Positions 4,378 through 5,644 are shown, numbered from the stretch's first letter. The stretch is 14,251 bases of DNA from Octopus sinensis (GCF_006345805.1 NW_021825861.1:1-14251); one strand, 5' to 3'. The notes: generated from the letters alone by a model not told the origin. Made by a program: numbers and translations.

Positions 4378-4500
4378 TATTTTTAATAGGGGAAACGTTT
4401 TATGTTATAGAAATCTTTGGTAAATATCAGTTTCCCCGTCTTCTGTTCTTGCTACTAAAGCCGTTTTGCTGTTTAATTCCAAATCTTGAGCAGAATTATG

Positions 4501-5071
4501 GGATCTTTACATTTTGACCGACAGATTTTTAAAATATTTTTTTGTAACTAAACACTTTCAAACTTCGGGTACTACTTCAATGGAGTGTATTCAGCTGAAA
4601 TTACTGCCGTTGATTGCCAACAACAACTATCGGCGGCGTATTTTTCGTTTGTCACTGTTATTTATGACATCGTTCGTGCATTTGTACTGGTTTTAGGGTT
4701 AGGTTTTTAGGGTTAAGGTTGGGGTTTTAGGGTTAGGGTTAAGGTTTTAGGGTTAGGGTTAGGGTTAAGGTTTTAGGGTTAGGGCTAGGGTTATCATAAA
4801 TAACAGTGACAAACGAAATGTACATCGCCGGAAGTTCTTGTTCACAAACAACAGCAGTAATTTTATTCAGCTGAATACACGTCATTGATTGGTTGAAATT
4901 ACCGAAATACGACAACTTTAACGTGAAATAACTTCCTAAATATAAGCTTTTATCAAAAACGCTAAGAGTAAAAGATGTTTTATATGACACATTCTACCAG
5001 TGTCCGAAGTTTGAAAGTGTTTAGTTACAAAAAATTATTTTTTAAATCTGTCGGTCAAAAGGTAAAGATCC
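4501..5071. mobile_element. 571-bp non-autonomous DNA transposon (Merlin- or MULE-like MITE) with nested inverted repeats
   Basis: 73-bp TIRs at 4501-4573 and 4999-5071 (67/73 identical), with termini GGATC...GATCC. Perfect 8-bp TSD GAATTATG at 4493-4500 and 5072-5079. Inner inverted repeat at 4585-4667 and 4794-4880. The superfamily is inferred only from the GG..CC ends and the 8-bp TSD. Confidence 0.92.
4690..4792 (+). repeat. Telomere-like (TTAGGG)n array inside the MITE loop
   Basis: Nine perfect TTAGGG plus TTAAGG, CTAGGG and TTGGGG variants. The 26-bp unit AAGGTTTTAGGGTTAGGG(T/C)TAGGGTT is repeated at 4741-4766 and 4767-4792. Confidence 0.93.
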
Positions 5072-5644
5072 GAATTATGATTTAAGTCGTTTCCTTTTCA
5101 CGTCTCTTCCCTATGTTCCAGCAACCCAGGACCGCATAATTTTCTCACATGTCCTTTCTCTAAGACTTCGGACTGTGATGAATGAGAGTTTTCTCTGCTA
5201 TTTCTACCATCTCCTATCTCCACTTGATGGCACTCCGATTCCTACGTTAGATGGATATATTTCCTAGTAACTAGTGAATATTAAACTAGTGTTTGTTTTG
5301 AGAGATTTCTTAATGTACTCTTTTTTGTTTCGTTTTGTTTGTTTGTTTTTATAGTATACAAAGTGAGCAGATAAAAGTTTTACGTATTCGACAGCTACTG
5401 TAGTTAACAACACATTATTTAAATGCATTTTTGTATAGAGAGAGAGCCATGGACGGTAACATACTTGGTGCAGCAGGGAAAACCCTGAAAGACCTCCATT
5501 CTCTATTTAACACAACAATGCATTGTATATATGGCGCGGAAGACACTTAACGCATTTCCCACTGACAAGGACCCATTTTCTTTTGAAATACACCTCAAAA
5601 ACATACCGTTCGTCGTAAGACAATTTACATTCCAGTTGTCTAGA

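Follow-up and report, generated by a model that had tools for sequence, protein, structure and literature searches.

In ciliates, the transposons TBE1 of Oxytricha and Tel-1 of Tetrahymena are bounded by telomere repeats. Penelope-like elements with telomere-repeat tails have also been described (PMC4522978), and molluscs provide well-documented cases of MITEs and other non-autonomous elements that contain tandem arrays (PMC3879986, PMC7492417). Further, a review has discussed transposition by mobile elements as a possible, undocumented route for the spreading of telomeric repeats (PMC6410037). Full-text literature searches, which covered papers but not the Repbase and Dfam catalogues, turned up no account of a MITE built around telomere repeats.

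The window considered here, i.e., the whole 14,251-nt stretch of DNA that was analysed, contains at 4501-5071 a non-coding element of 571 bp, henceforth the focal element. It is a real, almost fully palindromic MITE-like insertion with long terminal inverted repeats (TIRs), of which one copy was seen, and its identification as a copy of a non-autonomous TIR transposon can be held with high confidence. The original prediction had proposed precisely this, namely a non-autonomous TIR transposon (MITE) with a telomere-type array in its unpaired centre, and the target-site duplication (TSD), the TIRs and the predicted fold agree in supporting it.

Borders and terminal inverted repeats

The focal element is flanked, directly outside both of its termini, by an identical 8-mer, GAATTATG, which is found at 4493-4500 on the left and, with 8/8 positions identical, at 5072-5079 on the right. 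At fixed borders, and given the composition of the window, such an 8/8 match has a chance of 2.4e-5. Since neither the duplication nor the inverted repeat of the element can be extended by a single base, the TSD is exactly 8 bp long. Immediately inside these borders, the left outer TIR (4501-4568, + strand) starts with GGATCTTTAC and pairs with the right outer TIR (5004-5071, - strand), which ends with GTAAAGATCC; the two are complementary at 64/68 positions (94% by BLAST). The termini of the element are GG...CC, with a left end reading GGATC, and the terminus sequence is GGATCTTTACNTTTTGACCGACAG. When the comparison is widened to 4501-4573 against 4999-5071, 67/73 positions match (91.8%), and a repeat search carries the outer TIR to 82 nt at 88% identity, with the left arm reaching 4582. 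The outermost 28 nt of the TIRs are identical at 27/28 positions, and the top inverted-repeat bit score is 105, as compared with a maximum of 37 among 100 shuffles. These measurements bear out the perfect 8-bp TSD, the 73-bp outer TIRs at 92% identity and the GG..CC ends that had been claimed for this locus. Taken together, a TSD without mismatches, GG...CC ends and conservation that peaks at the very tips are the footprint of an insertion by a DDE transposase.

Additionally, the element displays several of the features by which a MITE is recognized, namely TIRs at both ends, a directly flanking TSD, and small size with no coding capacity. Its longest frames comprise 68 and 84 codons. A 65-aa left-arm query derived from the 68-codon frame had no relative in a protein homology search, an 83-aa minus-strand ORF of the element had no record by exact look-up, and Rfam gave no family match inside the element.

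A single interrupted palindrome

Inward of the outer TIRs lies a further inverted repeat, formed by a left inner arm at 4577-4667 (+) and a right inner arm at 4794-4888 (-), the latter being the reverse complement of the former with one 4-nt insertion; identity between them is 82% over 95 aligned columns. Across the narrower span of 4585-4667 with 4794-4880, where a second, inner inverted repeat had been called, the repeat is present at 83% identity, and the innermost 25 nt of the arms are perfectly complementary. When the left half is aligned globally with the reverse-complemented right half, the left arm (4501-4667) proves to be continuous, save for an unaligned linker of 8 nt (4569-4576) that sits between the outer and inner repeats. 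The right arm alone is interrupted, by a segment of about 101-115 nt (4889-4989/5003) which lacks a left-arm counterpart and appears as one large gap. On account of this one-sided interruption, what had been called a "double stem" is more aptly described as a single long palindrome with one asymmetric bulge on its right side.

Folded as single-stranded DNA, the element reaches a predicted -133 kcal/mol, as against -48.6 +/- 4.6 kcal/mol for shuffled sequences (z = -18). The predicted structure is one hairpin in which all 126 central nucleotides are unpaired; this loop consists of a unique 25-nt spacer (4668-4692, + strand), likewise unpaired, and then of the array, with no spacer between the latter and the right arm. 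The segment confined to the right side (4889-5003) forms only small local stems. The two-tier stem originally envisaged therefore stands only in part: the element does fold as a long hairpin presenting its repeats unpaired in the centre, but it is one interrupted palindrome and not a structure of two tiers.

Around neither the inner inverted repeat nor the right-side segment was a direct repeat of at least 4 bp found in combination with matching termini. As neither of these parts has a TSD of its own, and the right-side segment no TIR either, a nested-MITE reading of either is ruled out, and the whole is one element rather than a nest. Different ages for the outer and inner arms were also considered and found no support, the mismatches being 6/71 and 13/91, respectively (Fisher p = 0.33). 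Further, a repeat search found no direct repeats of 9 nt or longer inside the left arm, and the array is the sole tandem family in the element.

Superfamily affinities

TSDs of 8 bp are found in hAT and P elements as well as in Merlin. The hAT elements pair them with short TIRs starting YARNG (CAG/TAG type), and hAT is rejected for the focal element: the TSD length fits, but the GGATC termini and the long TIR do not. MULEs, which possess TSDs of 9-11 bp together with long TIRs, had been thought to fit as well. The long, G-initial TIRs would indeed be compatible with them, but the TSD of exactly 8 bp is too short, extension to 9 failing on both sides, and this assignment is not sustained.

Merlin elements are mobilised by the DDE_Tnp_IS1595 transposase. 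By definition (Feschotte 2004), they possess a TIR of 24-462 bp, a terminal 5'-GG and a TSD of 8-9 bp (PMC8101967). The 8-bp TSD, the 5'-GG ends (GGATCTTTAC...) and the 68-82-bp TIR of the focal element all fit this description. Merlin is hence a plausible best-fitting superfamily on these terminal features, which amounts to a fit and not a membership.

The telomere-like array

The array, a degenerate TTAGGG-like repeat of 101 bp with its G-rich strand on the + strand, occupies 4693-4793 and is detected by TRF at three periods: 6 (15.5 copies, 72% matches, 15% indels), 20 (4.6 copies, 84% matches) and 26 (3.3 copies, 90% matches). In length, in its position between the inner arms and in its period of 26, it conforms to the TTAGGG array of about 100 bp with a 26-bp higher-order unit that had been described from inspection. 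Nine TTAGGG dimers with at most one mismatch occur in the 14-kb window, all of them within the array, against an expectation of 0.04. The perfect repeats in the array comprise nine TTAGGG hexamers and four dimers, the longest perfect run being (TTAGGG)3 at 4747-4764.

When units are delimited as ending in a G run, the array is found to contain four copies of TTTTAGGG, four of TTAGGG and three of TTAAGG, besides TTAGG, TTTTTAGGG, TTGGGG and CTAGGG. Their order in the first half is TTTTAGGG TTAGG TTTTTAGGG TTAAGG TTGGGG TTTTAGGG TTAGGG TTAAGG, which is followed in the second half by TTTTAGGG TTAGGG TTAGGG TTAAGG TTTTAGGG TTAGGG CTAGGG TTA. Of the 26-mers, those starting at 4734 and 4760 are identical except at 1/26 positions, and the one at 4708 is less similar. 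Because the final pair of 26-bp units is thus separated by a single base change, the array has grown in place, and their near-identity means that one duplication or more must be young when measured against the 8-14% by which the two arms together differ. The array is clearly derived from TTAGGG and has now decayed, with the decay products themselves duplicated as 20/26-bp blocks. To call it "telomeric" assumes a host with TTAGGG telomeres; no dimers of TTAGG, TTAGGC or TTTAGGG are present in the window, a result that is uninformative on the host telomere motif.

Genomic surroundings and search for further copies

A blastn search (word size 7) recovered no second copy of the element in the 14-kb window, the self-match being the only hit; nor does the window contain an autonomous copy. 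Occurrence in many copies is what defines a transposon family. The gapped TIR pattern and the perfect inner-arm 25-mer had 0 matches in metagenome, prokaryote-genome and viral contigs, and these scans say little because the collections in question are essentially non-eukaryotic.

At 12365-12971 (-) the window contains the remnant of a Tc1-like DDE transposase, which is degenerate and frameshifted. A direct search with the fragment 12730-13056 (-) as query came back empty; an exhaustive HMMER search gave 178 relatives and a profile search 59. Protein clusters of this family at 90% identity or more are common to Hydra vulgaris and the water bug Ranatra chinensis, and, judging from such cross-phylum clusters as a putative signal of horizontal transfer, the family is a horizontally spread one. 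The best named matches of the remnant are from a crab, a copepod and a pseudoscorpion and, more distantly, from Octopus bimaculoides (a single entry, 42% identity). Three 20-kb ENA loci (ERZ21867824) and two Logan contigs share with the window the Tc1-like remnant alone, at 64-70% nucleotide identity, and contain none of the abundant dispersed repeats of the window and no copy of the focal element. A perfect (CCCTAA)3 is present at 12865-12882 of the invertebrate contig ERZ21867824 ctg121226l, where it adjoins a copy of the Tc1-like family (BLAST).

Several other repeats are found in the window. A second, unrelated and near-complete palindrome of about 421 bp occupies 11545-11965, with termini TTTACAAGATAAGGGC...GCCCTTATCTTGTAAA, arms that are 87-97% complementary and a loop of 9 nt (11754-11762). 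Sub-threshold Rfam matches to the MITE-derived miRNA precursor families MIR1120/1122 and MIR1509 fall at 11708-11806, and this palindrome probably represents a further MITE of the foldback type. Inverted repeats also delimit a third element (1306-1409 and 1624-1728); its arms, each about 100 nt long and about 80% identical, lie about 215 nt apart, and it is unrelated in sequence to the focal element. A reverse-transcriptase fragment at 6532-6828 (-), which matches Pfam RVT_1 with E = 8e-4, below the curated cut-off, is probably a LINE remnant. Two dispersed families, one at 2542-2758, 6774-7364 and 4177-4266 and the other at 3045-3422 and 5660-6024, are repeated within the 14 kb at 72-85% identity and in both orientations; in the host they probably constitute very abundant families of a SINE-like or MITE-like kind, and neither occurs in the 61 kb of ENA loci compared. 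About 23% of the window consists of tandem arrays (91 TRF rows), among them AGAT, CT, CCA, CTA, ATAC, TGT and AT repeats. The GC content of the window is 38%, and the CpG observed/expected ratio is 0.77 window-wide as against 1.13 inside the focal element.

Origin of the array

The array is most likely a passenger, i.e., a short, degenerate interstitial telomere-like repeat, which most simply sits in a part of the element that neither pairing nor binding constrains. By analogy with the general mechanism of TIR elements, it may be supposed that a DDE transposase supplied in trans would bind the conserved terminal ~28-68 bp of both ends, excise the element and insert it at staggered cuts 8 bp apart, the gap repair of which would yield the GAATTATG duplication. 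The copy that transposed to 4501-5071 would already have contained the array, perhaps acquired once in a progenitor, e.g., via break repair at the palindrome tip, and its length would then have changed in place by slippage or unequal exchange of the 20/26-bp units. That the array was present in the transposing copy and later expanded in place is the preferred reading, for which we judge the scales to be evenly balanced. Falling somewhat short of this, and offered tentatively, is the stronger proposal that the array belongs, as a constant module, to a MITE family of many copies, in which case cut-and-paste transposition, and not chromosome fusion or break repair by telomerase, would be a main source of the short interstitial telomeric sequences (ITSs) of the genome. 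The founding units of the array had already departed from perfect TTAGGG through independent events amounting to roughly 10%. Such a divergence, which at least equals that of the arms, might lend weak support to the array being older than the insertion, although the argument is a soft one, repeat arrays being quicker to mutate than unique DNA.

An alternative, which we consider possible but rather unlikely, is that the MITE inserted without telomere repeats and that the palindrome later broke at or near its hairpin or cruciform tip and was repaired with telomerase-made or captured TTAGGG; the decay and the 26-bp duplications would then have come afterwards and the array would be specific to this locus. 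Insertion of telomeric repeats at double-strand breaks is known from mammalian ITSs (PMC2246262, PMC7215372, PMC8537989), and the array lies exactly in the unpaired centre of the -133 kcal/mol hairpin. Within the loop it is placed asymmetrically, being flush with the right arm while a 25-nt non-repeat remnant of the loop persists on the left, a position that would suit a later event of break repair. Against this, neither arm is damaged next to the loop, where the closing 25 nt pair without a mismatch, and loss of flanking sequence is common in break repair (PMC7215372). The part of the array that clearly arose in place is in keeping with such a history, as is the merely 9-nt loop of the unrelated palindrome at 11545-11965, by which palindromic elements can exist here without an array. 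Yet the array is far more degenerate than fresh telomerase products.

The abundance of perfect repeats, i.e., nine TTAGGG hexamers and four dimers where 0.04 dimers are expected, and the fact that the variant units are one step from TTAGGG make it improbable that the array is an ordinary minisatellite, formed de novo by slippage from a T/G-rich loop and resembling a telomere repeat by coincidence. This is so even though the genome generates arrays readily, as is evident from the approximately 23% of the window that is made up of tandem repeats of many motifs, and though it is a period of 26 or 20, rather than of 6, that scores highest. The relatives of the window's Tc1-like protein, which are mostly arthropod and cnidarian, could also be cited in favour of coincidence, arthropods typically using TTAGG telomeres. 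Nor does the spacer beside the array favour a de novo origin: when the 25-nt spacer and the first array units were compared with the arm end, of which they might have been a duplicate, 30% of shuffles scored as well, and no duplication could be detected. Very improbable, finally, is that the structure was never mobile and arose where DNA around an ITS that was already there became duplicated locally in inverted orientation, an 8-bp direct repeat being present at its borders by chance. The single copy seen would suit this explanation, and inverted duplications around fragile repeats do occur, but the exact 8/8 repeat at both termini (P about 2e-5) argues against it, as do the GG...CC ends and the best conservation at the tips (27/28), which are a transposase signature. 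The passenger reading is preferred here for the array.

Functional potential

The array contains four perfect TTAGGGTTAGGG sites, which in principle are candidate duplex telomere-protein sites, and eleven GGG runs. These features could be taken to favour a MITE family that selection or exaptation has turned to the dispersal of telomere repeats, be it through TRF/POT1 recruitment, G-quadruplexes (G4) or telomere seeding, which we nonetheless hold to be highly unlikely. The array is decaying and not conserved, which weakens any such functional reading, and 100 bp is far below the length of functional telomere seeds in most systems. The imperfect G-quadruplexes suggested at the outset fare poorly, the potential of the array to form them being predicted to be weak from the spacing of its G runs: every quartet of G3 runs needs a loop of 8-11 nt, and none has all its loops within the 1-7 nt of the classical rule. 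The preferred reading is that the array of the element at 4501-5071 is without telomere function.

ITSs are routinely taken as relics of chromosome rearrangement and are also regarded as fragile sites. If many copies of the element share the array, the family would explain a class of ITSs without recourse to fusions or break repair, and such a transposon origin, if true, would alter the use of ITSs in the study of karyotype evolution. It would additionally provide hundreds of natural ITS insertions for the study of fragility and protein binding. If the array is instead unique to this locus, it would constitute a single case of repair at the tip of a palindrome, illustrating palindrome fragility. 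On either reading, nothing here suggests a telomere function of the array.

Comparison with known systems

In its terminal features, the focal element resembles the non-autonomous Merlin elements, with which it shares the 8-bp TSD, a 5'-GG TIR, the TIR length and the character of a small non-coding derivative; this likeness is one to the published definition of Merlin. The Merlin description does not include a telomere-like internal array such as the focal element contains. Another point of reference is provided by the foldback or long-TIR elements, such as FB of Drosophila and Galileo (PMC3573991), which, like the focal element, consist mostly of inverted repeat and form an extensive hairpin. 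The arms of FB and Galileo are, however, kilobases long and contain internal tandem subrepeats, unlike those of the focal element, which are without direct subrepeats of 9 nt or longer. Membership among the foldback elements was rejected as the arms are not composed of tandem subrepeats.

With respect to the array itself, the short ITSs inserted at double-strand breaks (Nergadze/Giulotto; PMC2246262, PMC7215372) offer a likeness in being internal, head-to-tail TTAGGG-type arrays of about 100 bp in one orientation. Those ITSs are defined against orthologous or allelic loci lacking them, which show a precise insertion, often with microhomology or a deletion of the flank, and are usually near-perfect, in contrast to the focal array, which is degenerate, has higher-order units and lies inside a transposon. 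TBE1, Tel-1 and the Penelope-like elements share with the focal element the physical linkage of a mobile element to a telomere motif. In these systems, however, the repeats are situated at the termini or the 3' end and form part of insertion or priming, whereas in the focal element they are central and have no evident part in transposition.

The mollusc elements DTC84 (Donax trunculus) and pearl-related elements (PMC3879986), as well as the Cg_HINE Helentron derivatives (PMC7492417), resemble the focal element in that their flanks act as a cassette for an array, and they share with it a central array of variable length that is prone to change in copy number in situ. They are rolling-circle Helentron relatives with short inverted repeats, an AA/TT-type target and satellite-like monomers of ~100-200 bp. 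The focal element differs from DTC84 and Cg_HINE in its 68-82-bp TIRs, its 8-bp TSD, its near full-length palindrome and its hexamer array. Membership in the Helentron/HINE group was considered and set aside: the central array alone is held in common, and with its long TIRs and 8-bp TSD the focal element is not a member of this type. It is a tandem-repeat-carrying MITE, an element of a known kind, with an unusual array motif.
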